Shown: positions 5 through 61,395, numbered from the stretch's first letter. The stretch is DNA of 64,000 nucleotides from Utricularia gibba (GCA_002189035.1 NEEC01000008.1:310001-374000), one strand, 5' to 3'. Translations and numbers: made by a program. The notes: generated by a model from the sequence alone, not told the origin.

Positions 5-295
5 CATTTTAGTCACTATATCTCTTTCATTGCGATGTGTGGCTATGAAATTATGTGAAGTTTATTTTATCGTGAAATTTTAGTCATTGTAATGCCTTCA
101 TTGCAGTGTGTGGCTATTAAATTATACAACGCTTATTTTATTATGAAATTTGAGTCACTAAAATGCTTTCATTGCAGTGTGTGGCTATGAAATTTTAGTC
201 ACTGTAATGCTTTCATTGCGGTGTGTAGCTATAAAATTATACGAAATTTATTTTATTATGAAATTTTAGTCACTGAAATGCTTTCATTACAGTTT
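5..295. repeat. Degenerate tandem repeat (5 units, 44-71 bp apart), each carrying a TCACTGT-N12-GCRGTGT spaced palindrome
   Basis: Left arms start at 13, 84, 155, 199 and 270. Each is followed by a 12-nt spacer (e.g. aatgctttcatt) and a GCAGTGT/GCGGTGT-like right arm. Confidence 0.85.
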
Positions 296-335
296 ATGAA
301 TTTGAAAGTATCCATTTTCATTGTTATTTATGCAG

Positions 336-1842
336 ACATAAACACATCAAAAAAGTTGAGGCTTCGATTCAATATTCCTACAGAATATCAATTGTGGGAT
401 AAGGAAGAGGATGAAGAGATCGTTGGTGATATTCCAGAACGTGTTGGTCCTAGGGGTTTTGCTATCAGTACTGAGCACCTTAGATGTGACTTGTGTGTGC
501 CAGTGGTACCATTTATGTTGCAAGTTTTGACATGCCTTCAAATTCCATTTTCACATTTGACTCCTAAGTCAGTGGCATATATATTGGCATGTGTTTACAT
601 TGCTTGTGAGGAAAGCATTCCCCTAGAATCGTCTATTTTTTTGCTGTGAGCATGTGTAGTAGAATAAAGGATTCACCAAATTATGTGATAAAGGGTAAGT
701 CTACAATTAAATTAGTGAAAGGTCTACGAAGTGGCTATGATAGTTGGTGGAAAGTTTTGTATGGGTTTCTCTCTTGAAGATTTACCAAATGATTTCCCAC
801 GCACACTTCCAAATTCTCATCTTATTGGAAAACCACAAGGTATTTTATGTGTTAAACAATTTTTTATACTATGTTCTTTTATGAGAATTGTTCTGATTTT
901 ATTGATCTAATTTACTTATGCTTACTATTAGGTGTTGAGATGTTACCAAGGGATGTCGTTGATGAATTCATTGCTTTCTTTAAAGGACAGACTAGGTCAT
1001 TGACTACAATCTTACCTTCCATCTTTAGAATACGGGGCACAGCCAAGTTTTGGTGTGGGAAAAAAAGAATTACAAAGAAGGATGATGATGTGGATGATCA
1101 AAGTGGAAATGATGCTGATAATTTACATGAAGATGTGGCGGTTGACAATGAAACAAATGATTTGGCAGCTGAAAATGAGGCGTTGAAGCAGCAACTAAAG
1201 TGATATCAATCCAGATGGCCTTCTTTCTATGAATCAAGTAGTCATATTCCAACGGTGCGGAAATTAGTAGTATTCGACGTCAATGGGATTTTTGCTGATA
1301 TTATTTTTCATTCATCATCAACCATCAAAGGGCATCCAGATAAGCGGATTTATGGGCGAGCAGGTATGGTATTTATTTAGTATTTCACACATTTGCAACA
1401 TATAGTTAGTTGCTAATTTATTGACTTGACTTTATTGCATATGTTATATTTTCAGTGTTTTTAAGACCAAATGCTAGGGAGTTTATGGAATGGTGTATGC
1501 AACATTTTGATGTTGCACTATGGTCCTCATGTGGAGGGTAATATACAAAATATTATATTATCTTTTTTATATATATGTTTTACATGTTATTCTTTTTGTA
1601 ACAGTGCACAACTAAACCAAGTCGAATATTGGATGTTTGGCGAGAAGATGTCAAATTTGGCATTCATATGGGATGGAACGAAATGCATCACCACAAACCT
1701 TCGAGTCCTCAAGAAGCCAACAAGTATAGTTTTGCTGAAAGAGTTGCGAAAAATATGGGAGGATGATGTTTTTCATGGCCGATATACACATGGTAACACC
1801 TTGTTTGTAGATGATTCATCATACAAGTCTACAACAAATCCA
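336..1842 (+). pseudogene. Transposase_28-like/FCP1(NIF)-HAD fusion gene, copy 1 (premature stops, last exon missing)
   Basis: Translated segments KLRLRFNIP..HLRCDLCVP..SHLTPKSVAYIL, an acidic/coiled-coil linker, KLVVFDVNGIFADI, VFLRPNAREF..WCMQHFDVALWSS and LAFIWDGTKC..LKELRKIW..NTLFVDDSSYKSTTNP. In-frame TGA at about 647 and 1201; GT-AG introns at positions matching the other copies. Confidence 0.75.
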
Positions 1843-1904
1843 ATAATAATTTTAGTTAAAAATTTCATAAGTTAAATTTTATTTTTTTAGTTTAAATTAT
1901 ACTC

Positions 1905-2530
1905 TGAGAATTGTAATTGATGATTACAATGATCAGTAGAAATAGTTCATCATCGTTTTGCTTAATAAAGTATTATAAACATTTTCTCTAGTAACTGTAA
2001 TTGATGATTACGGTGATCCGTAGAAACAGGTTATCATTTCCCTATATTACTTTCAATTCTGGTAATTGTAATCTGTAATTACGGTGGCCGTAAAATTTAG
2101 AGATACAAACTATTACTCGAGTAATTTTTATTTTCTCTTTTATGCTTTTTCGGAACACTTTTGCTTAATAGACTACTATCACCATGTTTTCTAATCACTG
2201 TAATTGATGAATTATAGTGATCGACAGAAATAAACGATTATGGTTTTTCTTATATTACTTTTATTTGTGGTAACTATCATTGATGATTACAGTGATCGTT
2301 AGAAATAGGAAATTATTATTTTTTTATATTAATTTTCTTTTTTATAACTGTAATTGATGAATTGCAGTGATTGAAAGAAATATGTAATTATTGTTTTCTT
2401 TATATTAATTTCATTTCTAATAACTGTAATTGATGAATTGTAGTGATCGACAGAAATATGTAATTATTTTTTTCTTTATATATATTTTTTTATTTCAGAT
2501 AACTGTAATTAATGAATTACAGTGATCAAC
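1905..2530. repeat. AT-rich tandem repeat (~70 bp unit) with core TAACTGT-aattgatga(a)tt-RCAGTGA
   Basis: Repeated taactgtaattgatga(a)ttRcRgtgatc units; 12-nt spacer versions at 2195-2220 and 2345-2370, 11-nt versions elsewhere. Confidence 0.85.
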
Positions 2531-2879
2531 ATAAATAAAAAATATTAACATGAAAAAGTTAAATGAAACGATATTTATGATTTTTAATTTCATTTATTAT
2601 TTATAAAAGAATATATAATATAATTTGATTTTTCATTTTGTTTAAGTTATTTATTTTTCTATTGTTTAATTGTATATATTTTTGAATATATAATAATTAA
2701 ATAAAATATACATTATGAAAAATTTAATTTGATTTTTTTATTTAATATAATTTTTGAATTCTAAAAAATATATTTTAATAATATTTATTACAATATTTGT
2801 AAAAAGAATGTAATATATTTTTATTTTTTTGTAAAAAAGATAATAGTATTAAAATATGTTGTCAAAAAGAAATTCAAAA

Positions 2880-3804: not shown

Positions 3805-4075
3805 TGTTAAAGCCTTGGACTTAGAGCAGGTTATTGGACCTAGTTTGAAGACAAAAAGAAGTATGACATGATCAGAGTAGAGTTCAACACCGGTGGGCAC
3901 ACATGGAGAACAAAAGCAAGGGAAAATAGGAGATGGCAACCTCCAGGTACTGCTCTTCCAACCTCTAGGCTTTAGTCCAAGTTTAAGCTCTAACCTTTGA
4001 TTGGTGGTAGGGCAGGCACTCTTAACGTCTAGTAGTTGGGTTGGGCTTGCTCTTCTTATTATAGATGATGGGCAC
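3805..4075 (-). repeat. Diverged LTR (3' LTR of older copy B), terminal CA lost
   Basis: Alignable to the LTRs at 12932 and 17385 (tgttaaagcc..ggacctagtttg..agttcaacacc..aacaaaag..gaaaatagga..gcaacctccaggt..ttgggcttgctcttcttatt). Confidence 0.7.
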
Positions 4076-4515
4076 TTAGGTAACTTGGTTTTATGGGTTT
4101 AACGGGTGTAAATCGTGTTTTGTTGATGGATTTACATAATTTGGGTTTAAATGAATACACGTTTGGTACGTGGGTATAAAATTGGGTTTATGGATAATTT
4201 TCATGGGAATTTACCAATACAGCCTTCCTCAACAATAAACTATTCGTCTTTATTACCATTTGTTTTCCCCTTCGTCCACCGACTTTCACACCCGATTGTC
4301 GCGGTGCTGCCGTTCGACGAGATCTCCCGATTTCACAAGTAATTGAGAGTGAAGAGCCATGGGTTAAGTCCAGATTGTATACTCCCTTTGTTGCACAGAG
4401 TTTCTCGTTTAAAATCCGTTGAATTTTGAGTCAATTTTACCGTTTACTTGTTGTAAGTGCTCGGTGTAGGTACTTTGTTCTTGCTGTTTTCTTTACTCCA
4501 GCACAGATTGCAGGT

Positions 4516-4659
4516 ATGCACAGCCCAATCGTGGTGGAAGACTCTCAGAAAAAAACGAAATGCGCCTGGAAGCCAGATGAGGAGAAAGACTTATTGCACA
4601 CTTTGAAGCAGATAGTGAAAGAAGGCTGGAAAATTGAGAATGGTTTTAGGGGTGGGTAT
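4516..4659 (+). pseudogene. Harbinger ORF1 Myb/SANT-like DNA-binding domain, truncated
   Basis: KCAWKPDEEKDLLHTLKQIVKEGWKIENGFRGGY matches the W..EE..LL..L......GW...NGF+.GY pattern of Myb_DNA-bind_3 proteins; no continuation found after the inverted repeat at 4681. Confidence 0.75.
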
Positions 4660-4680
4660 ATGTATTTTTTAAACACTTAT

Positions 4681-5378
4681 GTTTCTGATCGAACACTGAT
4701 CGCGGTGGCACCGCGTGTTGTAACATCTGGTGCCATCACTGGATTTGAAACCTTGTGTCTAAACGTGGTGCTTCGTAATATGCAACACCAATGCGGTGCT
4801 AGTTCATGACTACTCAATAGCAGCGCATTGAATGTGGCGGTAGTTGTAGCACCGCGTTTGCGAAAGAGTGCTCAACAACGAAGCACCGCACTTGTTCATA
4901 CGCGGTGCTTCCACCAACGGCGTCAGAACACTGTCTACCTTACACCGCATATATTTGCTAGATATATGCGGGTGTGCGCAGATAGTAGTTTGGCCTTATG
5001 TTGGACTCATGGGTTAGATGTATTTCACCTTCTAAGCATCCTTCAAGCAAATACCCTGTATTCCACATGAAAATGTAGGCGTAGGACGATTGTAGGTAAC
5101 TGGTATGAGCACCGTGCAGGGTAGACAGTGTTCTGACGCCGTTGGTGGAAGCACCGTGTATGAACAAGCGCGGTGCTTCGTTGTTGAGCACTCTTCCGCA
5201 AACGAGGTGCTACAACTACCGCCACATTCAATGCGCTGCTATCGAGTAGTCATGAACTAGCACCGAATTGGTGTTGCATATTACGAAGCACCACGTTTAG
5301 ACACAAGGTTTCAAATCCAGTGATGGCACCAGATGTTACAACACGCGGTGCCACCACGATCAGTGTTCGATCAGAAAC
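4681..5378. repeat. Long inverted repeat: 259-bp arms (4681-4939 / 5120-5378), 180-bp spacer
   Basis: Manual comparison of the arms gives about 7 mismatches; rich in GCACCGC/GCGGTGC motifs; no flanking TSD seen. Confidence 0.92.
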
Positions 5379-5440
5379 TTACAAAGTCAGCATACCATAG
5401 TTCACGCAAGATCCATGCAATTGCAAAGGTACATCATCCA

Positions 5441-7268
5441 TTACACAATAGCCTTGTAATGCTTCCACAATGGGTGTTCCTCGTCTATCGGACGTTCACT
5501 ACCCGTCGGCGATTGACGTGTGTGGGTACATCCATTACGTCAATGAGAGCTTCCAGGAACCACCTAATATCTCCCCCTCGAACCAGGGAACAATCATTGA
5601 CCGCGGTGTACTTGAAGGTGGTTGGGAATATGGCATTTTCGGGCTGTCCAATGTAAGCAAACAATCATTGGGTGCAAGATGGTGGAGAATGAGGGCGACC
5701 AGAAACTCACCGGGTTGTGTAGTGACTTGTATGGCGCATCATCGATGAGTAGCATATTAAGACGGTGATATTTTCCCTTGAACTTGGTGTTGGCGCCCCA
5801 TACATGATTCAAAACCTTAAGCTTAACCGTGTTGTTCCTGTTGTCGTGCACCGGATAACCTATGTCCACTGTCCTGGATCCATCCCATTGGAAGACGAGC
5901 TTGCTGGCTGCTGCAAGCCCTAGTAACCACTAGACCACATCGTGCAATTGTTCACTGAAACATGTTGTCAAAAAAAGGAAAGGTCAGCACCGTGCAGATA
6001 CCATTACCTGCTAATTGGTCGATCTTACCATCCTCTGGAAGACCAAATGGCGACGTCAAAGTGTTCCATGCAAAACTGTATCAACTCACATGCACCTGGT
6101 CGAAGATACACTACAACCACAACAAATAGTTCTGACACATGCACCAGATATTAAATGCATATGAAATACACCGTATTACCATTTCGCCCGTATATAACGG
6201 CATCCGGCTTCAATGCTCCCCACCTGACTTCACGATGATACACAATGTCCGCAAGTACACCATTGACGTCAAATATTAACAACTTACATGGTGGGGCTGC
6301 GTTATCACTCGACACTCCAACATATGGCCACCTTTGTTCATAACATGCAAGCCGACCACAGAGTTTAAGATTCTCTGCGTACAGTCTCTCCACTTCGATA
6401 TACTTTGCAGTGGCAACATCACACCCATCATCGTGTGTCGAGATCGTTTTTGGCCCATCCATGTTGCCCCTAATTTCTGGCTGCACATCTCCATCCTCTT
6501 CATGGGTCACCTCCTTAGGATCTTCATTCCTAATCTCACGTTGTCTACGGTGTCGAGGGGTTCCACACCACAAATGCTGTGTCCTAGGAGCATTGACAAA
6601 GGGGGGCAAAACGTCCTCTAGTGACTTTGTTATGCAAGAGAACAAATTCACAAACCTCCTTGCTGCACGTTTTGGCAATACCTCGATGCCTACAACGACT
6701 ACAACAACAAAGTCCATGAGTATTGTTGCAGACGACGTTAGAATATTCGAAGTAATTGTTTGTGATTACCTGATGAGTGTCCAACATTCTCTGACACTAT
6801 CAACGTTGTTGGCCATTCTGGAGTGGTGGGTGGGCATACCCATACAAAACTAGTCCACTAATCATCATATGCGCTTCTGATGTTTGTAACCAAAACCACA
6901 CCAGGTTTTCCATGAAGCGAGTAGTGCGGACTCCCCTTACATTGCACAGAAACAGAAACCGCAAAGAAGACACGCATTTCCGGGGGTATATCCCCCTCTT
7001 CACATATCTATAGAAATGCGAGTACGTGCGCCACATAATGTGGTGTAAGGTGGGAGAGTGGGATCTAGAGTGCAGCAAGTATCTGCACCAAGAAAGGGGG
7101 TGGGGGCAGTCGCAATCCACACCGAAAGTGCTTGGTGCTGACGGTGAAACTCGATGCTCCGACTCTGGACGGGGGTTCGGTGTCGAACGTTTCGCCTGGT
7201 TGTTTATCCCACATCACGTAACCGTCAGGAATTGAGAAGCAGGCATGTAGTTTCTCACACGTCAACAT
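5441..7268 (-). pseudogene. Transposase_28-like/FCP1(NIF)-HAD fusion gene, copy 2 (all exons present, frameshifts and stop)
   Basis: KLHACFSIP..KHFRCGLRLPPPPFLVQIL; PPCKLLIFDVNGVLADIV; VFLRPGACELIQFCMEHFDVAIWSS; KLVFQWDGS..LLIDDAPYKSLHNP; PENAIFP..GGDIRWFLEAL..HPLWKHYKAIV*. Confidence 0.8.
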
Positions 7269-8060
7269 CTACGAAAAACAACAGACGTAACTCATCTGTT
7301 TTGAAACGCTGAAGGCAAAGGTTCCTACCATCGCAACACTGTTGTGAAGAGGTTGTCAACCCATCTGTTTTCGCGGTGCTACTGTGCGTTTGCCGAAAGG
7401 ATGGAGGTGTAAGTGTGGAATTAATGAAGGTGTTTTGGAAAGTGTTCAATGTCAGGTGCCTTTAGTGTGCACAGGGGGGGTATTAATAGCGCTGGACAGT
7501 TGTCAACTGCGGCATTTTTTGCCAATTTTTTTTTGAAATTCGGAGCACCGGATAAGGCGGCACGTGGTGCTGCAATGTGCGTGGCGTAGCGTAGGCGTTT
7601 AGAAGCACCGCATATTACAGATCACGGTGTTTGGTGACTTTCAAGATTATTGTACTACCAATACCCTCGCTAATATGCACCAACTTGACACTCGTCTACA
7701 TCTTAAATGTTGACAGCACTGGATACGATGAAACACGCGGTACTACTAACAACTTTGGTATCATACTAGCCTCCGTAGCACCTCGTCTGAAGATCGCGGT
7801 ACTGGCTCCAATGCTCCACCATGTGGTACCATGTTACCCCATGGTAACACATGACACTATGGTACAATCCCCACACCATTTGCAGCAACAACCAAATACA
7901 ATGCAAACAAGTGTTCACGACGGAGTGTCAACTCGAGCTGAACTTGTTAAGGAGCAAAGCAAACAATTGTACTTAACAAATTCAATACAAACGACACGAT
8001 AGGTTCCGAACGAGAATCTAGGAAAACTACTAGCATCACAATGTCTAAAACAGTGCTACA

Positions 8061-9377
8061 TTAGCGGCGTCTGCGGGATGCCAGCCACTCGGTGTACATC
8101 CCCTCAGCTTGCTCGTCACGCCACCTACTCCATGCCTGATTTGAACCGAAAGATGTCGTGACGTCTTTTGCATCACTCATGTCCCCAGCTTCATCCTGGA
8201 AGTCCAATGGGACCTCATCCTCCAGGGGATCGACCACCATCTCCTTTCGAATAAGGTTATGGAGCAAAGCACATGCCAATACAATGCGATTCTGTGTGTC
8301 TACCGAATAGTGTGTATACCCAAGCTCGTTCGATCACATTTCTGGCTGATGCATGCCGCATGTTGAATAGCTCCTTCGCATTCTGAGGTACTCCATTTCC
8401 CTGGCCCCACTCCTTCAAGTGATAATAGACTCTATGGTATGGTGCCAAACAAGTGAAATATGTTCCATTATCACATATCCATTATCACATAGGTAATATG
8501 TTCTTGTGTCATCACGTATACATGGTACATGAAATCACTGGAATCACATGCGCAAGGGCTAAACAAGTGAAATACCTGGGCGTAAAAGACGAAAGACGTC
8601 GGATCGTGAGAGTGCATCGTTTAGCACCCGACTATTTGCAGCAGACCCCTCCCACCCAGCAATCACATATATAAATTTCATTTGTTCATCACATACACCC
8701 AACACGTTGATGGATATGACACCCTTTCGATTTCTGTACCTTGCAGCATCACATTTGTTAACTCGTATACTGATATATGTACCATCTATGGACCCAACAC
8801 AACCTTGCAAATACATAATCAATGTTAGATACATTCTTAAAAAGAAGCACGAAAGATGTGTCAATCTGAAGTGTTTGAACTTTCCTTCGGATGCACGTTC
8901 TCCAGCAACTACTGGAGTCTCTAAGAGCACCTCATGGAGGCAAAGCACCGCATGCAACACCTTTTGAAAGCACCGGGACACAGTCTCGGTGCTCCTCCCG
9001 TAGACATGTTTCTGCACCCGCATTTTATTATGATGATCTAATATTCCTAAAAACATGCAAACCATCTCCGGAACCATTACATATTTTCCAGCCTTTAAAC
9101 TAGAACGATTTTTTAATAGGCTACATAAAATAACCAAGGCATCTCGGCTGATTCTCAAGTTCTCAATGGATGCACTGTTGACATCACTCACCAACCTACT
9201 AATATACTCAACTTGTCTAGGAATCTTGTGTGTAAGTGAATACCTGCGTCTCCCCCTATATCCCCTATGGTATTTTTTCCAATGTAAGTATACTAACACA
9301 TTCATCTGCACCAAATATTTGGTCAAAAATGCTGCTGCCGCACTCAAGATGACATGACCCTCCATGAAAAAATCCAT
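8061..9377 (-). pseudogene. PIF/Harbinger DDE transposase (DDE_Tnp_4 type), degenerate
   Basis: GCVGSIDGTYI..YRNRKG..NVLGVCD..MKFIYVIAGWEGSAANSRVL, YHLKEW..KELFNMRHASARNVIER and CALLHNLIR; frameshifts present. Confidence 0.9.
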
Positions 9378-9845
9378 GTCCCCTCAATAGTCGAAAAAAT
9401 CGAGCAAAATAAATCCACACACACAACAACACGGATTCTGAAATTGGAAAGTCACAGATAAAAACCCACTATGTGATACTGCCATGGTTGGACAAGCGCG
9501 GTGCTACCGTGGACCAACCCACCAAGGACAGAAAGCACACTTACCGAAAGACCTAGTTTATTTGCTCCCAAAGAAGACGCGACGCCACCGGCAAATCACG
9601 AACAAAGTCTGGGTTGTAGATCTGCGTTCAAATGTGGTTCACGCAAGGGCAAAAGTGGAAGCGCCGAGCTAAGTTTAGCTAACCCCCCCCCTAGGTTTAG
9701 CTAAACCCTTTTCCACGGGTTCCCACCTGGTTTATGGACAACACGTGGGTTTATTTTTACCCACCTGAAACCCACAAACCAAACATGGGTTTATGTCTAA
9801 ACCCACGTCGCAACCAACCTAAACCCAACAACCAAACGCGCCCTA

Positions 9846-12800
9846 TGTGTAGAGCAATAGCTTCTACAAAAGAGGGGAAATGATTAAGAAATACTATGAA
9901 GCGTTTCCAAGTTACCCTTCTAGACGAGATATCCTCTGCACTACATCAATAGCATGACTTGAGATCCTTGACAACATGCATCAACAATAGCCTCTCAGCA
10001 ATACACAACTGGTGGGACTATCACGGTCGAGTTTTCAGGGGGTGTACCCAGAAATCTTTTCAGCAAAGATACATGGAAAACATGATGAATGTGGCTACAT
10101 GATGGTAACTTGAGGCAATGAGCAGCACTACCAATACACTTCTCCACTTAAAAAGGGCCATGGTAGCGAGGTCCTAGTTTGGAGATAGCTTGTTCTCTGA
10201 TAGAAACATAGTGCAAGTTTCAAAGTTAGAGCCAAACCCAATCACCTGGCATGTGATGGCAATCATGGTAGGATTTCATACATTCTTGAGCTGCTCTAAT
10301 GTGATCCCTCAAAGTGGCTAAAATGTCAAGTCCTCTTGCACAACAATAGATCCAAATCAATAGCATTGGTCTCTTGCAAATGATATTGACAAATGGTCGA
10401 AGGCACCCTATCATAAACAGCTTCAAATGATGTCATACTGATAGAGGAATGACAATTAGAGTTATAGGCATATCCTGCCCAAGATAACTAGAATGACCCG
10501 TGATGAGGATGTCAAGCATAGAAAGCCCGAAGATAGGATTCCAGAATGCGGTTTGTTACTTCTATTTGGCCATCCGTTTCTGGGTGATAGGCAAAGCTAA
10601 AGAAAAGTTGAGTGCCATTAAGCCTCAAAAGTTCTTGCCAAAACTAGCTTGTGAAAACTGGGTCATGATCCATAATAATATCTTGAGAAAGGCCATGTAA
10701 CTTGAAAATATTATCAAAGAAACTTTGGTAACATTCGTAGTAGTAAAAGCTCATTTCAAAGAGATAAAATGAGCATGCTAGAGCAATAAGTTCTTTCTCA
10801 TAAGCTAGAAAACTTTTATGAGATTCAGACAAAATCAATTGAAGTAAGAGATAGGATGTTCGTCTTGCATCAACACAGCACCGATCCCAACATTGGATGC
10901 ATCACATTCAATAACAAAAATGCGATTAAAACTAGGCAATGCCAGCACCAAAGTAGATGCCGACTATTCCTTCAACCAAGAGAAAGCTTGGTAGCCTCAA
11001 GATTCCTAATAAATTTATTCTGATGCAATAGTGTAGTAAGTAGTGCAGTCGCTGATCCATAATCTTTAATGAAACGGTGGTAGTAGCTAACTAAACCCAA
11101 AAAGGATTTTAGTATGGAAGAGTCTTGAGGAAGGAGCCATGTAGTGACAACTTCCAATTTAGAAGGATCAGTTTCCACTCCCTTAGCAAATATGATGTGT
11201 CCTACCTAACCTCATATTTCAAGAAAACACATTTGATTCCCTTCAAATATAATTGGCTCTCTTGCAGCTGCTGAAAAACCTTTCCCAAGTTAATCATATG
11301 CTCTGAGAGGGTTGAGCTGTAGACGAAGATATCATCAAAATAAACTAAGGAATGTGGGAGTTCATTTGCGGTAGGTTTTCAAAACAAATTTCCTCATCAT
11401 ATAAAAAAAAGCCTCATTCATTAACCATTAGAAGGTGGAGGGTGCATTGATCAGACATTAGGGCATCACCAGATACTCAAAGTGGCCTGCATGAGTACAT
11501 ATGGCCTATCGAATCAATAGCCATGCGAACTTGATTGAACCCTATATGAAGATCAAGCTTAGAGAAATATTTAATCCCCCAAGTTCCTCTAAGAGTTCTT
11601 CAATGATGGGGATGGGAAACTTGATAGGCGCGGTGATTTTATTCATTCGACAATAATCTCCACAAAGTCTTTAGGTACCTTCTATTTTGGGTACTAGTAA
11701 CGGGTGAGGCAAAGGGTGAAGATGAGGGCCTGATAATTCCTTTCACTAGCATTTCTTGATATTGTTTCTTGATCTCTAACTTCATATGATAGGTAGTTTA
11801 GTAGGGTCGTAGAGCTACTGGAGAGGATCCAGGTTCAAGAAGAATTTGATGATGACAAGCACAAGAAGGAGGTTATGACCTCGGTTCTTGGAAAATATCA
11901 TCGTATCTCTATGCTAGCTCGAAGATAAGAGTCATAGAGAAACATGTGGATTTTTTAGGGGATTGTTGTATACCAACCAAAGTATACATTTTTCCATTGT
12001 GTTCAAATGACATTTGCTTCAATCAAAAATTCAAGATCACGTCACCTAGTTTCATCAACCATTTCACGCCAAGAATAACATCATAGTGAAGCTTATCAAT
12101 AATGGTGAAATTGAAACACTCTTGAAATTCCCCCAACTACACAAGAACACCATCGGCACCTTCAGAGACAATGACTTTGGCTTCATTAGTAGCTAGCCGA
12201 ATAGCGTGTCTTGTGTGAGGTAGAATATTAAGACCTAGAGCAACGGTCATCTCTTGTTTGATGAAATTGTGAATACTATCAGTGTCAACCAGGACATATA
12301 CTATGTGACTTGTGATCTTGACTTCAAAGACCAACTACTCAGGTTCTTGAGTCCCCTTTGGGGGCCAATTAATGCATTCATAGATAGGAGATTCTCTACC
12401 TCAACAACCTCATTCTCAACAGTAGAATCCTCTAGTGGATCATCGCATATAACGATGTAAAAGAGTTGTTTACACTAATGACCCGTGTGATATTGTTTGT
12501 CACAATGAAAGCATAAATTGAGTCTTTGATGTTCTACAACTTCCTTACTTGTCATTTTCTTCTTAGTGGTAATTTAGAGGTGGTAGCCGGCCGAGCCAGT
12601 ACCATCGATTCCTCACTGAACTTCTCAATAGATTGTGTCCCAATTTTCAACATAAAGGCTTCAATAGGCCATGTATGTAGATCTGCAGTAGATCAAGTTC
12701 ATTCATTGAATTCATCATGGATGCTATTTTCCTTAAGGCGTGTGATTATAGGTGTTTAGATCTGTAGAGGTGTTCTAAATTTGCAAAAGATTTCGGAGCT

Positions 12801-17342: not shown

Positions 17343-17363
17343 GGTGTGATTTCCGGATGAGGG

Positions 17364-17380: not shown

Positions 17381-17384
17381 AAGA

Positions 17385-36174: not shown

Positions 36175-36184
36175 GTTGGGAGGG

Positions 36185-41480: not shown

Positions 41481-41531
41481 TAATGGAATCTCTAAACATT
41501 CTAATATTTCTTCTAAAAAGGGCAACAATGG

Positions 41532-42838: not shown

Positions 42839-43280
42839 AATGGTAAGAGCAAACTACAACGAAAATGCTCCGTGCTTAAGACAAATCCCATTGGACCCAC
42901 ACGGTTTGGAATTTCACTCTCAATCAATTCATTCGGTTCTTTGTCTCAAATCTCATATTCATCTCGTATCAAGAATCTAGTTCTCAATTTTTCAGAAGTG
43001 TAAATCTACAAAACACCCATAGGTATTGAATACAAGAAAATATTCAAATGCTTGTGCTGTTCATCGCGCATTTAGGAGCCGAATTCTGAATTTTCGAAGG
43101 CTGTTGGACAACAATTGGAGCTGAATCCATAAAACCCATGTGCTTTGTTGGAGACCTTTTAAAAGGTATGTGTGCGACTATCTAAGGAAAAATGGAATCG
43201 TGTGTATCTACGGCTGATAGTTATGTATGTAAGGTTTGAAAGTGATTTGTTTCGCTTGATTGTGTTTCAGGTAACCAAAT

Positions 43281-44295
43281 ATGGAAGAATCACATCAAAG
43301 TGTGACACCTTCACACGAGCAACATCTCGAGTGTGATATTGAGGTGTCGGTCAATAGGGAAGATGTCTCCTTCACCTCAAAAAAAACGAGATGCTTCATG
43401 CATCAATTGGCATGAACATTTCAATAACGACAAGGAGGCCAAAAAGGTATGTTGTAAGTATTGTGGAATCATGTATGACCATGGTACAGGTGGTTCAACT
43501 TCTAATTTTATTCGCCACATTAGAAATAAGCATATAGACAATGCATGTATTTCATTGAGACAACCTACTTTAAATTTTATGCATGGCCATGTTTCGAGCT
43601 TTTCATTTGATCTTGATGCTGCCCAAATTGATTATGTGCTTACATTGATTGCTAGTGAAAAGACTTTTGTATAAACAGAAAATCCATTTTTTAGATATTT
43701 TTATCAATCTAGATCGCAACCTAGATTTGCTCCCATGTCTAGGAGAAAAGTTGTTAAAATTGTATTAAAACAATTTGAAGAAAAAAAATCACATTTGATC
43801 TCTAATTTTCAATCTATGAAATGCAAATTGGGTTTAACTTGTGATGGTTGGCATAGTATCAATGGTAAGAATTATTTAGTTGTAACTGCTTATTGGATTG
43901 ATTGCAAATGGTTTATACAAAAGAAAATCCTTGGGTTTAGACCTTTGGATTCTCCACACACGGGGGCACAAATTGCTGAATTTGTTATTTCTATATGTAT
44001 TGAGTATTCAATTATTGATCTTGTATTTAATATAAATCTTGATAATGCCTCCCATAACACTACTATGACATCCATGTTGAAATCATCTATGAATCATATT
44101 TTAGGTGGGTGTTTCTTTAGGTCAAGATGCATTTGTCATATTTTGAATTTATGTGTACAAGATGTACTAAATGAAAATGATATTGAGGCTGCTTTGTCTA
44201 GTGTGCGTAGGATAGTTTATCATGTGAAGATGTTTAGTACAAAAAGGGCGCCTTTTAAGCATCTATGTGAGTTAAAAGGTCTAGAAGACATTAGC
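43281..44295 (+). pseudogene. hAT transposase (family B), BED zinc finger and N-terminal catalytic part, 3'-truncated
   Basis: VCCKYCG..STSNFIRHIRNKH (BED), LGLTCDGWHS..YLVVTAYWID..W..QKKIL.F..PHTG, LDNASHN, RCICHILNLCVQD. Confidence 0.88.
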
Positions 44296-44452
44296 TTCAA
44301 TGTTCTCCAAGCACCACAAACACACCATTGCGGTGCTTGGAAGACACTGGCTTCAATGTTCTCCAGGCACCGCAAACATGCCATTGCGGTGCCTGGACAT
44401 CAAGAGGCCTCAATGTTCTCCAGGCACCACAAATATCGTGTTGCAGTGCCTG
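44296..44452. repeat. Three 56-57-bp tandem units with CCAGGCACCGC-N12-GCGGTGCCTGG-type palindromes
   Basis: Left arms at 44311, 44367 and 44424, all with 12-nt spacers. Confidence 0.92.
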
Positions 44453-44638
44453 AACCAGATAGTCTCTCTCAATGATCATGAGCATTATAAATGTAATGAG
44501 ACGGAATTGCATTACGAATGTTCTGCAAAGCGAAATCAATGTTTCAATAAAAAATGCGGCACAAATATGGTCTTGAAATTTAGAAACAAGTTGCGGTTGA
44601 CGTCCCTTCTCTCAACAAATGCTATGTTTCATAGCATA

Positions 44639-46420
44639 TCAAGCAAGTGCCTTATAGTAATCCCATAATGGATGGTGAGAATCCAATGGAGCCTGTCCTA
44701 TACGATACTCATTCACGAAAGCTGACACACTGGAGGCCACCAGTGGTCCCTCCAAAAAGTCTTGTATTTCATCTCCTTTAGCCAAGGCAATGTACTCAAT
44801 ATTCTTATGGGTGTACGCCATAGGGAAGATGGTATTATCATGTTGTTGAAAATTTCAAGATACAAGAGTGTAACATATAATATTAAGAGAATTACAATCA
44901 CTTACTGGATTCCTAATTGACTTAAATGGCGAGTCATCAATAAGAAGTATGTTGTTACTATGATACTTTCCTTCAAATCCTGCATCTGGATGCCATAAGT
45001 TCTCAAACTCTTTTAGCATCACATTCTTCGCACGATTGTCATGAGTATGCACATCTGTTTCACTCGTTTTTGAGGCATCCCATACAAAAGCCAATCTATT
45101 GGCCTCTTAGAGCCAAAGACCTACTTCACTATCCCATCAAGTTTTGCCCTATAACAGAGTTTCAACATAAGTCATGTATATCAAACAACACAAATACGCA
45201 AAAAAGTTTATGATGTCAATATTATGTGCCCCGTGATGACTATATCCTCACGTCAAAGTGCTCCATACACCACTCAATGAACTGCCGGGCATGAGGTCGT
45301 AGGAAAACTATAAAAACCAAAAAACACAAAGCATTGCATTAGAGTCGTATAACGTACAAACACTGAATATATTACCTTCACCTTACCATATTTATCATAG
45401 ATGACTATGTCAGGCTTTCGTGGTGGTCTTTGAGACCGACCTCGAAACACAATATCGGCCAACACACCATTCACATCTAACACAATCAACTTTGTTGGAG
45501 GTTTCACATCAATAGTTGAGGGCCACCATTTATCCATCAACTCTCATACCACTTCAATTTTTCACGAAATGATCTGTTTTCTTCCAGTAGATGATTAACA
45601 TCTATTTACTGACTCTCTTGATGTACTCGAGTGTTGTTACTGGACTCTCCTACAACATCATCATCAACTTCTTCAACATGCACTTATGGACATTTACGAG
45701 ACACCCTAGTTTGACCACACCAAAAGTGAGTCCCTATGGCATTGACATATGGTGGCAATATATCATTCAAAGGTCTACTCTTGTTACCAAAAATATCAAA
45801 GAGCGCATCTACTCCTTCTCGGGGTATCCTCTCAAAACCCTACAATGAATGTATTAAGTGAGTAAAATAAATTTGGGATGAGTGTTTTACTTGTAATACG
45901 GAAAAAATGCTATACCCTTTGCCTTTCCAACATTGGATGAAGACTCAAGTCATGTGGGAAAATCTAATTCTTCCGAATGAGACACACACACAAAACTAGT
46001 TCACCAATCATTATACCCACTATGTACATTTGCTACCAATGTTATACCCGGCTTACCTTTCAGTGAGAAATTATTGGTTCTCCAATTCTTCTTACATATG
46101 CTAACTACGAAAAACACTGAAAGAGCAGGTACAAGGTGTTCTTTGGGACACACGCTCATGAATGATAAAATATATGCGACCAAACGAGGAATTAAATGAG
46201 ATAACAAAACTTCTAGGCAATTCAATAATTCAACTAAAAATGGCTCTGTGGGTAATGTTAGTCCACATCGAAAGTGTACTAACCGCAAACCCCAACGGTC
46301 CAACCCGTAATATAAGGTCACCATCAATGGTCTCCTCATCCTCCTTGTCCCATAGGAAGAAGCTGTCGAGTATTATGAACCGCAGCCTCAATTTATCCAA
46401 TGTGCGCATTGTCTCCGGAG
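44639..46420 (-). pseudogene. Transposase_28-like/FCP1(NIF)-HAD fusion gene, copy 4 (all exons present, frameshifts)
   Basis: DKLRLRF..LWDKEDEE..RVGP.GFA, HFRCGLTLPTEPFL..LSHLIP, KPPTKLIVLDVNGVLADIVF, AFVWDAS..LLIDDSPFKSIRNP, RIGQAPLDSHHPLWDYYKALA*. Confidence 0.8.
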
Positions 46421-46669
46421 TGTGTACTGCTACTTCAAAATCTCAAAAACCACCTCACAAAAATTTTCTCCAACTCTTTGCCAACTTGCACCTTTTACCT
46501 TTCCAGGCAATTATCACGATGATTTACACTCTACGAAAATGCATTTGTAGTATGTCGAGCGGCGGGTTGCAGTGTATGTTATCGTGGGTGAAAAGTGTGT
46601 TTTCATTAGGGTGGTGAGGCTTTCAATGAATATATCTAATATTATTAAATTCTAAAAAAAAAAAAACTA

Positions 46670-46807
46670 CCAACCCATGTCAACCCGTGACACGAGACAG
46701 GTCAGCCTGTCTAACCCGTCAACCCGTATTCGCCAAGTCAAACATCTCATTCTTTACCCCGCGGGTTCGATCCGTGACCCATCGAGTCGGACCTGTGCCC
46801 AACTCTA
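46670..46807. mobile_element. hAT-type right terminus (family B)
   Basis: Ends GTGCCCAACTCTA (reverse complement TAGAGTTGGGCAC), with AACCCG subterminal motifs distinct from the AACCG motifs of family A. Confidence 0.65.
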
Positions 46808-47380
46808 GTGTAATATATATTTTTTACATAAAATACTTAAATATAATGTGTTTAATTTTATTTGTATTTGTTTATTTTAAAAATATGAAAATATAATATA
46901 TACTTTGTATTATTAATTTTAAATAAAGTAAATTATGGCATATCATTCATGAATATTCCGTGATCAACTTCTGCTTACTTAGAACCAAATTCATATTTCA
47001 AAATCTATTATATGCATAATCTTCACCTAAAACGAAGGTCAAATTGAAAGTGCAAGGACCCGCAAGCCTTGATGAGAAGGCAGTAGTAGTATGTTGCCAT
47101 TGCTCACGGGAAGGGTATCAAGAGGATCAGTTCCACGGAGAGTCCCGTCGTGAGTTTTCCTTCCTTGGATCAAGAAGCGTAAAACGCAGTAGCTCTTCTA
47201 TACAGTCCTAAAATATAAATAAAATTAATTAAAAGAATTAATAAAGATACTATCTGATAAATGATTTTTAAACATATAATATTCAATTAATTAGTTTTTT
47301 TGTAGGGTAAAGTGGGTTAACCCATCTGAATTGACGCGACAATACCATTTCATTCATCAACAAACTTCCGGTGGTGGAAA

Positions 47381-54520: not shown

Positions 54521-55749
54521 TTGCACGTATAGTTTTATAGGCATCTAGGCACACTCACATTCTCTAATTGCATGAGATACTTATAGTGTCTGAGGCGGTG
54601 TACATGGCATTATATAGGCCGCATGCATTATTGTATATTGGAAGAAGAAGAAAGAAGGGTGATGGATATTAGAGGTGCGTCTGGTTCCGAACTGTATGGC
54701 TCCAATGAACCGTTGATTCCCAATCGTGGTTCGCCATGGGCAACAGTTCCGTTTCGGTTCAGAAACGCATACCCAAACCTTGAACTAAATTGAAACCGGA
54801 ACAAAGATTCACGAACCAAACTGTAACCAGAACCGATCAGTTACTATGGGAATACGTTTTCTAGGCACCCATATGAACCATTATGGGTGTTTGGCAGTGA
54901 AGTTTTTAACAATTATTAATTTTATATATTTTAATATTATCAAATGATATATGTAACAATATTAATTTTTGTATTTCATTAGATATATTATGTGATATAC
55001 TATGTTAATTTATAAAATACCTTAGTTTAGATTACTTGATAAAATAACCTAATAAAGTATAATTAAAATTAGTATAATTTGTGACTTAAATAAATGAAAT
55101 AAATTATTAAAATGATTAAATTATTAAAATTTGAATATACATATGATAAAATTAAATTTTTTTAAACAAATACAACAAGATTATAAATCATATAAAACCA
55201 ATAAAATTATTATTTATATATTTATTTTTTAAAATGAATATTTTTGTACAGTTGTTTTTTATAATCTCTTGTAAATATTGCGTATTTTTCAAATTAAAAT
55301 CAAAACGTCATCTATTTTATAAAGTGTTTCTAAATGTCATTTATTTTTAAAACAAAAAGTAAAAAGGATTGAATAGATTAAATTTAAAAATTTACATCAC
55401 ATATTTATCACAAAATTTACATCACAAAATTTACATCACATAGTAAAAAGGTGTCTGAAGAAGATTCTAGACACACTCAAGAACGTATCAGAGTGTCTGG
55501 AAATTCGACAACCATGACCCTGAAGGACACGCTGCCCAAGCACACTTAACAGAGCTTATACATGTTCATATGTGTTCATATTGATCTAGAGGATCGCTAT
55601 TCACTGGAGCATATTTCACACAATGAAAATAGGAATTCAATGAATTTAATCGTAACGACATAATTGTCTCATAGAAAAAAAGTTAATGAAAGTATTCCAA
55701 CTACAACATAATTGTCAACAAGAACTAATATTAGAGGTTTCCTCTATCA

Positions 55750-57830
55750 CATAGGCATGCATAATACTCCCATAATGCATGTCCTTCACGTATGTGGAGC
55801 TGTCCTATTCGGTTGACATTAATATAGCTTGAAACATCATGAGCATATCGTAACTCTTCAAGGAAAGTTCGCATCTCACCATCAACATTTAGTGATGCAT
55901 CATCTCTATTAATATGTGAATAGGTACTTGGAAAAACATGATTATTTTTCTAAAAAATGTAGGGTTAGTTTTGATATATAACCAAGTGTATGTTAGAGGA
56001 GAATAACAAAAATGGCTTACCAGATTTTTCATTGACTTGAGAGGTGAGTCATCAATCAATAAGGTATTGTGACGATCATATCTTGTGTTCAATCCATTAT
56101 TGACAGCCCATATACGACTCAACTCTTTGATGTAGACCGTGTTGCTAGGATTGTTGTGAACACGTGCATCTGTGTCCATAGTCATTGATTGGTCCCTCAA
56201 GAAAATGAGTTTATCGAATAACGAAGGTGTAAAGACTCATTTAGTAATTGCTTGCATCTGCATCCTACAAAAGAAATCTCTTACAAGTATTTGTGCAATT
56301 CTAAATACCAACAAAAAAAAAAAAGATGCAACACATGTATCCACTGTGGGATGACCACAAAGCTACATCAAAATTATCCAAACACCAACTAATAAACTCA
56401 TGGGCATATGAATATAGAAAGATTGCATATATTACACTAAAAACTACCTATGATATTTCACAAAATGTTACTGCATATAACACACAAAAATAAATGTTGT
56501 GTTAATGTACCTGATCGACCATATATGATTTTGTTTAGAGGGATTCGTGACCTTGACGGTCTAGCCCTATATACGATGTATGCAAGCACATCATTTACGT
56601 TCAAGATAATCAGCTTTCATTGAGGTTTAGACGCACTCAAAGAGGGTCCAATATACGCTCAACCGCTTTCATACCAATCCAACTTATAGCGAAGCTCTTC
56701 ATTCTCCTTTCCTATCATCCACATCATTGAAACCATGCATGTGCTCATCCCTTCAACATCATTGCCATCTTATGTCCTCTCATCCCTAGACATGTCTTTA
56801 TGATACTGTAGGATTCTTCAACACACCACACCAATATCGTTTTATCCTCAACGCATCCACAAATGTTGGTAAAATATCAATAAAATTCCTTAGCATACTT
56901 GATAAGAGTATAAGATCTTTTATATCTCTCTTATGTAAGATATCAAATCTTATAATAAAATAGAATTATTATGAATAAATTCAATAAAAATATTCAATAA
57001 AAGTATTGAATATATTCAATAGTACTATACTCGATAAATATACACTTAATAAGAATACATTAAAAAAAAATTTAATAAAAATATTAAATAATAATATATT
57101 GAATATGAATATATTTAAAAGATATTCAACAAGAATAGATTGAATAAAAATAGATTAAAAAAAATTCAATAAAAATATTGAATAAGAATAGACTGAATAA
57201 AAAAATTCAAAAAAAATTCAAAAAGAATACATTGAATAAAAATAGATTCAAAAAAAATATTCAATAAAAATATTGAATAAGAATAATTCTAAAATAAATG
57301 TAATAAGAATAGATTGAATAAAAATAGATTTAAAAAAAATATTTAATAAAAATATTGAATAAGAATATAATCAAAAAATATTCAATAAAAGTATTGAATA
57401 AAAATATTCAACAAGAATAAACTCAATAAGAATACATTTAATCATAATAGATTCAATAAAAACATTCAATATGAATATTCAATAAAAATATTAAATATTT
57501 TTATTCACATTTCTTATACCTATACAATGAAAGATTTACCCTTCACCTTGCCTACTTCACTTAAATTAGGATGCATTTGAGGAAACTTGGCTTCCATTGG
57601 ATGACATATCCAAACAAAATTTGTCCATCATTCTTCAAATTCTCTTCTCACATTCTTCATCAACACCAACTTTTTTTTTTCTATTTAGGGTATAGCGGTT
57701 CCTATTTAGAGTCCTAGAGTAAACACTCATAGGAAAGAAATAACAAGGATCCACCTCAAGAGACAACTCCTCACAAATACTCACAATGGCCAACACATAT
57801 AAAATAGATCTTAGAGTCAAATGGGACAAA
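55750..57830 (-). pseudogene. Transposase_28-like/FCP1(NIF)-HAD fusion gene, copy 5
   Basis: SHLTLRSILYVLAIVSICEE, KLIILNVNDVLAYIVY, VYIKELSRIW..NTLLIDDSPLKSMKN, HVFPSTY..DASLNVDGEMRTFLEEL..HALWEYY. Confidence 0.78.
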
Positions 57831-58399
57831 AAAAACCTCTAAACATTCTAATATTTCTTCTAAAAATGGCAATAATGGTAAGTGCAAACCACAATGAAAA
57901 TGCTCCATGCTTAAGGCAAACCCCATTCGACTCACAGGCAATAATGGTTCTCAATTTTTCAGAAGTTTGCATCTACAAAACATCCATAGGTATTGTATAC
58001 AAAATCAAACTGCAATAATTCGACAAGGTATTTCAATTTGGAATATAGATCAGTAACCTATGGTAAAAAATAAATCACTTACCTTGTTTGATTTAAACAA
58101 TACTCCAAGTAGACGGTGGGCGATTAGAGTTGTCTTAATTGACAACATAGGGAGTAGGTAAAGTGGGGACAGGGGTAGTGATGTGTAATGTGGTGTATAG
58201 GTGTATGGGGATTTGGTTTAATTAACCAAATCATAGGCTAATCACTCGGTGATAACCCATGTTTTCCCCACACCCTAATCTAACCCCTACACCTCACACC
58301 TCGCAGACAGATTAGACAAAATGTGCCTTATCAACGATGTCCGATTGGGCCCTTCTCCTTAGGTGCTTGAGGCCAACCTTTGATTCTCCCACACTCTTT

Positions 58400-59097
58400 T
58401 AGGGCTATATGGTACTAAAGATTATGCTGGTAAAGAAAACGTTGCAAAAAACAGAATCAGACCTCAAATTAAATGCTGAAAAACATAGTAAGACAGTCAC
58501 ACACGTAGGACTTGCGCAAGCAAGGCTTCACCGCAGATCCTCAGCCGCAAGTGCTCACACGCGCATGCTCGACTCTAAACAAAAAAAGTTGATGAAAAAC
58601 GAAAGGAAAGGAATCCAAAACATGGTAGACTCGACTCTAAACCCTATATTGACTTTCTAGTCGTCCACAATGACTCTATCCTTTTGATCTTCGCGTTTGG
58701 ATCTTTATATAATGGTAGGGACTTGTCGGGATTTCTTGATGGGCTCATATCAAATCTTTTATCCGGATCTTCTAAGATTTGATACAAATCTTCTAGGATA
58801 AGATCCAAATTTTTTAAGATAAGATGCGAATTTTATCTTATCCGAGAATCTTTGACTGAGTCTTCATCCAGATAAACTGAATCTTTGACTCCATCAAAGT
58901 AGCTCGAAAATCCCCCAAATTATGCCAAAATTATCCTGAAAAATCACAAAACAAACTTTCCTTCCAGAAAGATCAAAGTGGTATGAAATATATAAAATTC
59001 TTCAAAAAACATAAGGAAAGTGGGATAAAAAGAATGCAAAACCCATCTAAGTGAATCCTAAAAATCACAAATATATGTGACACAAAATCACTTATCA
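58400..59097 (-). mobile_element. Probable truncated Athila-like LTR fragment inside hAT A2
   Basis: The minus strand begins TGATAAGTGATTTTGTG at 59097; no matching TSD found, left boundary approximate. Confidence 0.3.
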
Positions 59098-59239
59098 AGA
59101 TACATTGTTTGAATCATACAATCTTAATTAAAAGCATGAATACAACATTTCATTATAAAGTAATAGTATTTCATAGAGCACACAATATTTCTAAATTAGG
59201 AGTTTTCAATTTCATCTTCACTTGAACTTAAGGACAACG

Positions 59240-60620
59240 TTTAATTTCATTTCATTGCCTCCAACTAATCCTTTAGACAAATGCATGCCTCCAAGGTCTC
59301 TGCATTCAATTTGGAGCGCTTGTGATTAAGAACTTGTCCCCTTGCGCTAAACGCACTTTCAGATACCACTGTAGATACTGAAGGTGTTATAAGATATTTG
59401 ACCATTCTAGCCAAGATGGGGTAAGTAATAGATATTGTTTACGCCAACTCAATATATCAAAGTTGTCATCATCAACACCCTCAACAATAGGAGTATTATT
59501 GTAAAGTGTAATTTGATCAATAAAATTTAATGAAGATGATGAAAGGGATGACACAAATGAGCTATGTTCCTACGAATAATGTCTATCGGATTGCAACTGC
59601 CAAACATCGTATTATTATATGTTTTAGGAATAGGAACATTAAGATCACTGTATTTAGAAGCATAAAAGAAATATTTCAAAAATTTATTTTTCATATTTTG
59701 CACTTCATTTCCCAAAAAATCACAATCACCTTGATGATCATAAAAAGTAAACGAAATTTTACAAACATATGATAATAGAAGTTGAAAAGTTGGATAATAA
59801 ATATCACTCAAAATTTTAGTACAAGAATAATAATCCTATTTCGCACTAAACCTCTTATTTTTTCAAAAATAGAATGAGTCAATAAATTATAACCTGTAAA
59901 AAATTCACAAAATTCAATAAAAATATTTTCATAAGGAATCAAAAATTGTAACATATTATATATAGAATTCTATTTAGTTAGACAATTATTTTTAAATTTA
60001 CAATAAGAGATATTTATTTCTTAACAAGTCATTTTAAAATCATCTCATCTATTAGATATAGTTCTAATTATATTAACTAAATCACAAATAGGAGTTAAAA
60101 AAATTTCACATTCTTTCAAATCACTTTGAACACACAAATTTAAGATATGATAAATGCACCTAGTGTGGAAAAAAAATGTTATTCAACATAGCATTCATGC
60201 TACTCTTCAAAATGTCAATAGCATTTGTATTTACACATGCATTATCCAAAGAAATAGAAAAAATCTTATCATATATTCCATAAAATGGTGTGACCTTTTC
60301 AGCAATTTTAGCAATAAAAAAACCATTATATGGTGATGTCAATTCTTAAAAAGCTATAATTCGTTTTCGCATACACCAAGAATTATCCATCCAAGAACAT
60401 GTAACAACAATATAACTCTCATTGTTACAACATTTCCAACCATCACAAATTAAACAAAAATTACATTAGAAAGATTTAAAAGTAGAAATTAAGGAGTCAC
60501 ACATGTTTTTAAAATCCTCAAGTGCAATATGACGCACGGTTTTCTTAGTAGTACCGCAATTGAGGTTGTTTCAACATATCATCAAAAGAAGCTTTTTCAA
60601 ATAATGAAGATCCAAAATTA
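59240..60620 (-). pseudogene. hAT transposase of family A (catalytic part, DUF4413-like region, dimerisation domain), degenerate
   Basis: ICDGWK..YIVVTCSWMD..W.MRKRIIAF, ISLDNACVN, MKNKFLKYF, YPILARM..VSTVVSESAFSA..LN.ETLEACICLKD. Confidence 0.88.
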
Positions 60621-61179
60621 TTAAAAAAATTTGAATTGTTTAATAATTTTCTATTGATGTTATATATTTTATATTTATTAATCTCACTATAATTTTATAA
60701 TTTATAATATTTTACTGAATATATTGTTGGATATACTATATTAATTTATAAAATGTCTTATTTTAGAGTACTTTGTAAAATACCTCAATAAAGTATAATT
60801 AAAATGAATATAATTTGTTACTTAAATAAATGAAATAAATAATTAAAATAATAAAGTTATTAGATGTTGAAAATTCATATGATAAAATTAAATTTTTTGA
60901 AATAAATACAATAAGATTACAAGTCATATAAAACCAATAAAATTATTTTTTATATTTATTTTACATTTTAATAGATAGATTTTATGTAATCTTTTGTAAA
61001 TATTGTGTATTTTTTAAATTAAAATAAAAATATCATCTATTTCATAAACTTTTCCTAAACTTCATCTATTTTGGAAACAAAAAATAAAAATAATTAAATA
61101 GATAAGATTTATAAAATTAAATCACAAAAAAATATAAATAACAAATTTTTGTCTTTCCAATTTGCTTACCTGGAGCGGG

Positions 61180-61395
61180 AACCATTTTCCAGACACCAAC
61201 ACAAGCCAATGTGGGTGTCTAAGAAGAGCATCTGAGACCATTCCCCAAGCACCCACATTTGCTTGCATAAGTGTCTCGATAGGGCAACTGAGACCATTTT
61301 CTAGGCACCCACAACTCTTGTGGGCGTGTCTGGGAAGAGGTGCTTGAAAAGATTTTCCAAGCATCCACTTCTCTCGTGTGGGTATCTGAGAAAAG
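61180..61395. repeat. Four tandem units with exact 56-bp period carrying (A/G)CACCCA-N11/12-TGGGTGT-type palindromes
   Basis: Left arms at 61193, 61249, 61305 and 61361; spacers 12, 12, 11 and 11 nt. Confidence 0.85.

Follow-up and report, generated by a model that had tools for sequence, protein, structure and literature searches.

The stretch of Utricularia gibba DNA analysed here (GCA_002189035.1 NEEC01000008.1:310001-374000; 64,000 nucleotides of one strand, called the window below, with positions counted from its first letter) carries five copies of a spliced gene, the cassette, which encodes a TRP28 (Transposase_28) region, a short coiled stretch and a NIF/FCP1-like region. Copy 2 belongs to a PIF/Harbinger transposon, copies 3 and 5 to one hAT family (hAT-1) and copy 4 to a second hAT lineage; copy 1 lies at the edge of the window, beyond which its backbone continues. 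Each of the five elements also carries spaced palindromes that hold the same short core at the same distance. We propose, with a probability of roughly 0.4, that these palindromes are dimer binding sites of a protein supplied in trans by the elements, the cassette product being the leading candidate for the binder. The weaker claim, that they act as protein-binding cis elements of the transposons, appears fairly probable from the same sequence comparisons.

A first-pass annotation of this DNA had listed inverted arms separated by 12 nt beside every copy of the cassette. The inverted repeat was present at 19 of its 19 coordinates, and nearly all of the repeats fall into one common frame of 24 bp, CAC-N18-GTG, that is, 6-nt arms around a 12-nt spacer, with outer extensions that lengthen the arms to 7-13 nt. 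Three of the sites (13, 39088 and 61249) are weak, being shifted or having only 5-7 of 9 outer pairs. Further sites beyond that list were found at 4709 and 5327, 9724, 43312, 54866, 56720 and 61305. The pattern of the annotation, CACYR-N-(d)-N-YRGTG, gave 12 hits at d = 12, against 0.68 expected from 200 block-wise dinucleotide shuffles (largest shuffled count 3), and 0-3 hits at each of the other values of d from 4 to 20. A looser pattern (CAC and 3 nt with at least two of three complementary, N12) gave 13 hits against 1.8 expected, and generic 7-nt palindromes had a flat spacer distribution. Within the window, the fixed spacing thus appears as a single sharp peak at 12.

Since the post hoc choice of the pattern had to be guarded against, an unbiased scan of 64 trinucleotide cores at 21 spacers (1,344 classes) was run, in which hits within 300 bp were merged. 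The CAC/12 class came first of the 1,344, with 11 clusters against 2.0 expected (z 4.8). The five cassette elements occupy 37% of the window and contain all 11 clusters (binomial p 2e-5, or about 0.03 when corrected for the number of classes), and CAC/12 is the only class not rich in AT to hit all five of them, so that the reported company of palindrome and cassette holds for every copy. No CAC/12 site was found in the 40 kb outside the cassette elements, comprising LTR (long terminal repeat) retrotransposons, host genes and host promoters.

Each palindrome is an inverted pair of a half-site built around RCAC(C), with the CAC and GTG cores 18 nt apart. The half-site reads AAGCACCGC in the Harbinger element, YYARRCACC in the two hAT lineages and, in a CpG-decayed form, GTCACTGYAAT in copy 1. 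With at most one mismatch, AGCACCGC occurs 54 times in the window against 18 expected, and 29 of these hits are within the 5.8-kb Harbinger (about 5 per kb), where half-sites of this type lie near both ends (4301, 9498), in a foldback described below, at 7373-7803 and in the transposase open reading frame (ORF; 8926-8993). In five plus/minus pairs of AGCACCGC half-sites, three in Harbinger and two at copy 4, the distance between the two starts is exactly 20 nt, as in the N12 arrangement. YARRCACC reaches 1.4-2.0 per kb in hAT copies 4 and 5 compared with a background of 0.1-0.2 per kb, a 7-10-fold higher density.

The placement of the sites is also regular. In five of five copies an array or patch follows shortly 3' of the cassette, in non-coding DNA. 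Other sites are promoter-proximal, directly upstream of the cassette for copies 1 and 2 and upstream of the transposase for copy 5, and the complete hAT-1 element has two further ones, 196 and 802 bp from its left end. Fixed spacing, a conserved half-site core and a free spacer, the features expected of a spaced dimer site, are all present, and a core held at an exact distance around a free spacer, reiterated near promoters and 3' of genes, is the signature of a site for a dimeric protein. The suggestion of such a site made in the first pass is partly upheld. Within the window, two of the three conditions set to refute it turned out in its favour, and the fixed 24-bp frame, the specific core and the non-coding reiteration agree with it, the identity of the binder standing at the level of a candidate.

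Copy 1 of the cassette (356..1842, plus strand; frameshifted and decayed) lies between two tandem arrays. The upstream one (1..328; units of about 71 bp; frames 14, which is weak, 85, 156, 200 and 271) is situated 30-350 bp before the cassette start and has arms CACTGYAATG, and the downstream one (1874..2547; units of about 76 bp; frames 1993, 2196, 2272, 2346, 2422 and 2501) contains palindromes that are near-perfect over 24 bp (CACTGTAATTGA / TSAATTACAGTG). The arms CACTGYAATG fit a CpG-deaminated form of CACCGCAATG. The earlier view of copy 1 as a product of C-to-T decay agrees with the mixture of GCGGTG and GCAGTG units in its array and with a strong excess of C>T and G>A changes in genomic paralogues of the Harbinger; the dominance of these changes among the Harbinger copies is, judged by the type of substitution, the mark of methylation-driven decay.

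In the Harbinger element, the foldback (4678..5381) lies 3' of cassette copy 2 (7238..5711, minus strand, with in-frame stops) and consists of 268-bp arms, 96% identical, around a 168-bp loop. In each arm there are about seven AGCACCGC-type half-sites and a pair of N12 palindromes, those of one arm at 4709 and 4884 and their mirror images at 5327 and 5152. A second cluster of half-sites (7373..7803), with N12 palindromes at 7546 and 7606, is situated between the 3' end of the transposase and the start of cassette copy 2. The sequence CACCTG-N12-CACGTG in the subterminal region (9724..9747) may be a chance match.

In the hAT elements, cassette copy 3 (42987..39666, minus strand) is followed after about 300 bp by two 108-bp units (39052..39252; frames 39089, weak, and 39197). 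Three 56-bp units, each containing CCAGGCACCGC-N12-GCGGTGCCTGG (44284..44455; frames 44312, 44368 and 44425), lie 450 bp 3' of cassette copy 4 (46391..44906, minus strand) and begin where a hAT transposase ORF breaks off. The element of copy 5 (57935..56024, minus strand, 5'-truncated) has the palindrome AGACACACT-N12-AGAGTGTCT at 55469..55498, about 500 bp 3' of the cassette, and GGCACCCA-N8-TGGGTG(TT) at 54866..54889, 196 bp from the left end; the latter is decayed at the orthologous place in the copy-3 element, where the arms are decayed and the spacer is not. Four units of about 55 bp (61190..61392; frames near 61194, 61252, 61305 and 61360) form an array on the right side of the same element, 260-460 bp from its right end, upstream of the transposase and beyond an AT-rich repeat (60632-61126). 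A further palindrome, CACACG-N12-AGTGTG (43282-43340), was noticed where a truncated hAT transposase frame has its very start, on the other strand and about 330 bp upstream with respect to cassette copy 3; chance may have produced it.

Several observations weigh against the proposed explanation, the first of them being the limited independence of the sites. Those at 4883/5151 and 4709/5327 are mirror copies within one foldback, and the units of the tandem arrays are recent duplicates, so that comparing the units of one array is uninformative about conservation. The hAT arrays of copies 3, 4 and 5 align mutually, including the left flank (TTYTC-YARRCACC ... GGTGYCTRG), which indicates shared descent for the units of the two lineages. 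Because of the mirror copies, the single family of copies 3 and 5 and the homologous hAT arrays, the number of independent contexts is about three (hAT, PIF/Harbinger and copy 1) and not five. The 10-mers that recur between arrays, CACCGCAATG in those of copies 1 and 4 and AAGCACCGCA in those of copies 2 and 4, are within chance (p about 0.15), no single k-mer is significantly common to all families, and the longest common words between arrays are not significant either. The robust signal is therefore the core together with its exact spacing, which are kept across lineages that have unrelated spacers and linkers and cassette proteins of 45-57% identity. Between copies 3 and 5, changes affect 2 of 18 arm positions and 3 of 12 spacer positions, too few for a test. 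The possibility raised in advance that all arrays were one duplicated sequence with no extra conservation of the arms was not seen, inasmuch as the lineages share arm core and spacing only. That the spacing is kept on differing backbones is true of Harbinger and hAT, the spacer sequences being unrelated, with about three lineages to count instead of five.

The same observations are the strength of the view that the palindromes are unrelated, family-specific structural repeats, and that the CAC...GTG frame is a low-information coincidence, sharpened by duplicates and by the choice of sites in the first pass, with no common factor behind it. The counts are inflated by mirror and tandem copies, and hairpin-prone tandem repeats are common in the non-coding regions of transposons; tandem arrays peculiar to one family and of no known function are a usual feature of plant transposable elements (PMC11963269). 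However, CAC/12 still ranks first after 300-bp clustering and is confined to the cassette elements, the peak is seen at one spacer only, and one frame recurs in Harbinger and hAT elements whose sequences are otherwise unrelated. We consider this explanation unlikely but serious.

The range of the comparison is a further point on the negative side. As to the frequency of the sites in transposable elements lacking the cassette, the expected absence was found for LTR retrotransposons; the window contains no cassette-less DNA transposon with which to compare. The copies in the window are dead relics, and all five cassettes are broken by stops or frameshifts. No RNA contig of the Harbinger copy was present in four RNA runs of the species. 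Furthermore, several paralogous contigs continue differently at 4659, so the foldback, with four of the copy-2 sites, is peculiar to this copy or to some of the copies, and a portion of the evidence from copy 2 comes from a structure which those contigs lack there. The Harbinger family itself is abundant, with 1,227 to 3,822 contig pieces per run at a threshold of at least 80% in three DNA runs of the species (80-99% identity). Its paralogues cover the element most thinly in the interior of the foldback and in the 7546-7742 patch, which would fit non-coding parts that evolve fast. The foldback may be a separate insertion that itself carries half-sites. It shows a possible TTA duplication, off by one base, is the only palindrome structure with long arms, and sits in an apparent Myb-like (Harbinger ORF1-type) reading frame starting near 4500. 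The single palindromes, at about 35 bp, are too short to be miniature inverted-repeat or foldback elements.

The cassette itself adds other difficulties. Its five copies were located by tblastn with the copy-1 exons as query, and between lineages the identity of the encoded proteins is 45-57% (about 70% for copy 3 against copy 5). The half-site variants do not follow the similarity of the TRP28 regions among the four lineages available. The TRP28 assignment itself is supported by Pfam, with 26 bits against a cut-off of 26.2, and the family was confirmed in the ESM Atlas with a score of 0.96. An AlphaFold model of the TRP28 ORF, built on an alignment of five sequences, reached a pLDDT (predicted local distance difference test) of only 45. 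At the exon level NIF is weak, as Pfam finds it in two of five exons with a best E of 0.013, and a PDB profile search with the NIF region returned no match. In addition, the first NIF motif reads DVNG in place of DxDxT, with the second Asp changed to Asn; D-V-N-G (or V) is found in four of the four copies that keep this HAD/NIF motif (1255-1365, 6178-6285, 40146-40256 and 45385-45492). As the general acid/base Asp is replaced by Asn, the cassette product may be a pseudo-phosphatase or an altered enzyme.

Searches for relatives of the gene gave little. An all-protein HMMER search with the 188-aa ORF of copy 2 yielded a single weak match, which belongs to a contig of fungal appearance with a KDZ transposase and was discarded as irrelevant. 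With the TRP28 ORF of copy 4, a word-indexed protein search gave no match, and a back-translated scan of metagenome contigs produced 172 pattern matches, none of them confirmed. A literature search turned up no account of these palindromes, nor of a TRP28-NIF gene carried by DNA transposons. Two peculiarities of the cassette copies may be recorded here. Copy 3 is interrupted by a 1.3-kb insertion (41533-42838) that is absent from copy 5, and the right 200 bp of the insertion are an inverted copy (86%) of 38053-38259, just outside the left end of the element. Inside cassette copies 3 and 5 (40801-41151, 56979-57497) there are long degenerate arrays, probably intronic, whose period is about 13 bp (ATTCAATAAAAAT).

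The choice of the cassette product as candidate binder has two grounds. The cassette is the only gene common to the hAT, Harbinger and copy-1 elements. Moreover, TRP28 is predicted to bind DNA, and TRP28 ORFs of Retand elements occur near family-specific tandem arrays with units of 8-100 bp (PMC11963269). According to the mechanism that we propose, the palindromes would be reiterated cis motifs carried by the transposons themselves, and the elements would supply in trans a sequence-specific DNA-binding protein that binds these motifs as a dimer. The TRP28 region would contact the half-sites and the cassette protein would pair up, with a role in regulating the transcription or chromatin of the element itself or in aiding transposition, as with TNPA or VANC.

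The first of these two systems, TNPA, resembles the present case in the layout of its sites. CACTA subterminal regions contain arrays of inverted motifs that are able to form stem-loops and are recognised by TNPA (PMC2613891), and the Arabidopsis protein TnpA binds at the Spm termini where motifs are clustered at high density (bioRxiv 10.64898/2026.08.24.746577). The likeness lies in short motifs reiterated in direct and inverted orientation, in pairs that form stem-loops, and in density near ends and promoter. Such dense direct and inverted reiteration of a short motif in non-coding parts is found in the window for the 29 Harbinger half-sites and for YARRCACC in hAT. The half-site of hAT-1, CAGACACTCTGA (55469-55498, 39194-39223), agrees at 10 of 12 positions with what we take to be the 12-bp TNPA motif of maize En/Spm (En-1). 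TNPA is an element-encoded, non-transposase dimeric DNA-binding protein, and a comparable role is proposed here for the cassette product. On the other hand, the elements in question are hAT and PIF/Harbinger, the gene is TRP28-NIF with no Pfam sign of TnpA, and the site type spans superfamilies. CACTA membership was rejected, given the terminal inverted repeats (TIRs) TAGAGGTG (hAT, with an 8-bp target-site duplication, TSD) and GGGC... (PIF) and the DDE_Tnp_4 and BED-finger ORFs.

In the VANDAL family of Mutator-like elements, work by Hosaka and co-workers from 2017 reportedly paired the accessory protein VANC with short motifs in the non-coding regions and tandem repeats of its own family. 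Those motifs are short and single, unlike spaced palindromes, neither TRP28 nor NIF is related to VANC, and VANC systems are family-specific, whereas the present site type is common to superfamilies. Retand, a Ty3/gypsy family, shares with the cassette the same domain, TRP28 (PF04195), in an antisense ORF adjoining tandem arrays; its members, however, are LTR retrotransposons without a NIF domain, and the study of their TRP28 ORFs (PMC11963269) mentions no palindrome or common motif. By analogy, the system would work like the site arrays of TNPA and VANC while being a member of neither.

Alternatively, the palindromes could be genuine protein sites with another binder, either a host silencing or transcription factor or the transposase or Myb-like protein of each element, with convergent half-sites. 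CACC/GGTG cores are common targets of transcription factors, and the promoter-proximal and subterminal positions are those of sites for transposases or accessory proteins. In the Harbinger, a Myb-like fragment was recognised by eye at 4500-4660, where Pfam gave no match. But hAT and PIF/Harbinger transposases are unrelated, and the 40 kb outside the elements, host promoters included, contain no sites. The transposase role is also better filled by other motifs. In hAT elements, subterminal motifs bound by the transposase, for example the AAACGG repeats of Ac, lie within a few hundred bp of the ends. The palindromes differ from the motifs adjacent to the TIRs, which are GGTTCGGAAC-type in hAT-1 and GGGTTTA-type in Harbinger; these are more likely to be the transposase sites, and in comparison with Ac-type hAT elements the GGTTCGGAAC-type repeats beside the TIRs fit better, as the palindromes lie further in and recur in Harbinger. 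Another binder of this kind appears distinctly unlikely.

It is still less probable that the palindromes act as hairpins in RNA or single-stranded DNA, whether as transcript-end structures, read-through blocks or small-RNA precursors. Most units do fold, with stems of 10-14 bp, energies of -11 to -28 kcal/mol and z of -2.8 to -7.3, and arrays are located 3' of the cassette in five of five copies, in two cases between the cassette and an opposite-strand gene fragment. However, the core sequence is kept and not pairing alone, units 39197 and 7606 fold poorly, and arrays are also present upstream of genes; no Rfam match reached the gathering score, and the four RNA runs mentioned above gave no contig of the Harbinger copy. 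Helitron 3' hairpins were rejected because the sites form long-loop arrays inside TIR-bearing elements. Finally, recombination or breakage hot spots, or mobilisation signals that mark rearrangement or cassette exchange, are a very improbable explanation: the copy-4 array starts exactly at the break of the hAT transposase ORF and the copy-2 foldback is where this copy departs from its family, but these are two junction cases only, and the conserved core, the exact spacing and the dispersed single half-sites of Harbinger are left unexplained.

The elements that carry the sites are embedded in plant-like nuclear DNA with host genes (among them a PPR protein, a PTR2-family transporter and a kinase fragment), LTR-retrotransposon pieces and several DNA transposons. 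The PIF/Harbinger with copy 2 (4070..9846, minus strand) has the PIF-type TIR GGGC... and GGGTTTA-type subterminal repeats at both ends and a DDE_Tnp_4 ORF at 9377..8559; its PIF-type terminus GGGCGCGTTTGG (reverse complement) ends near 9843. One genomic contig, with a short side of 33 nt, joins 4073 to 9847 and skips the whole Harbinger, which looks like the unoccupied-site form inside a relative of an LTR retrotransposon. At 9847-17670 two partly overlapping Ty3/gypsy-type segments, 72-88% alike, contain integrase, RNase H and SH3_Tf2-1 ORFs, and one of them is abutted by the Harbinger.

The complete hAT-1 element with copy 5 is 7 kb long (54670..61656, minus strand), has TIRs TAGAGGTG(C/G)G at both ends and is flanked by the 8-mers ATGGATAT / TTGGATAT, which agree at 7 of 8 positions as an 8-bp TSD. 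Its transposase (60549..60024 and downstream) is on the same strand as cassette copy 5, and an AT-rich direct repeat of about 500 bp is found near both ends (54898-55401, 60632-61126), each time beside palindromes. The hAT-1 element with copy 3 (38299..42987, minus strand) has the same left end, with the left TIR TAGAGGTGGGTTCGG at 38299, and its DNA is about 80% identical to that of the copy-5 element. Copy 4 and the right end of the second hAT lineage occupy 44906..46808 (minus strand), the related TIR TAGAGTTGGGCA, in reverse complement, ending at 46808; on the other side of copy 4 is a truncated BED-finger hAT transposase on the opposite strand (ORF 43333-44290, plus). The two hAT lineages are related and have TAGAG-type TIRs.

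A broader idea would unite these elements: the TRP28-NIF gene and the palindromes may form a portable trans/cis module, passed among hAT, PIF/Harbinger and Mutator-like transposons. In that case TRP28 would be a sequence-specific DNA-binding domain that tethers an FCP1-like (possibly pseudo-) phosphatase to the promoter and 3' region of the element, acting on RNA polymerase II or silencing, as a counterpart of TNPA and VANC independent of superfamily. We regard it as speculative and rather unlikely as it stands. The observation of the palindromes is solid within one window, and the portable-module claim rests on about three lineages; should the link between palindrome and cassette not hold across the genome, only ordinary family-specific repeat arrays would be left. 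Regulators that are encoded by an element and paired with clusters of cognate motifs, such as TNPA and VANC, have so far each been tied to one superfamily. If the proposed link is true, an accessory system would have been exchanged between superfamilies (hAT, Harbinger and probably Mutator-like), with the TRP28-NIF fusion as the only common gene, and TRP28, a widespread plant domain, would gain a testable target sequence.

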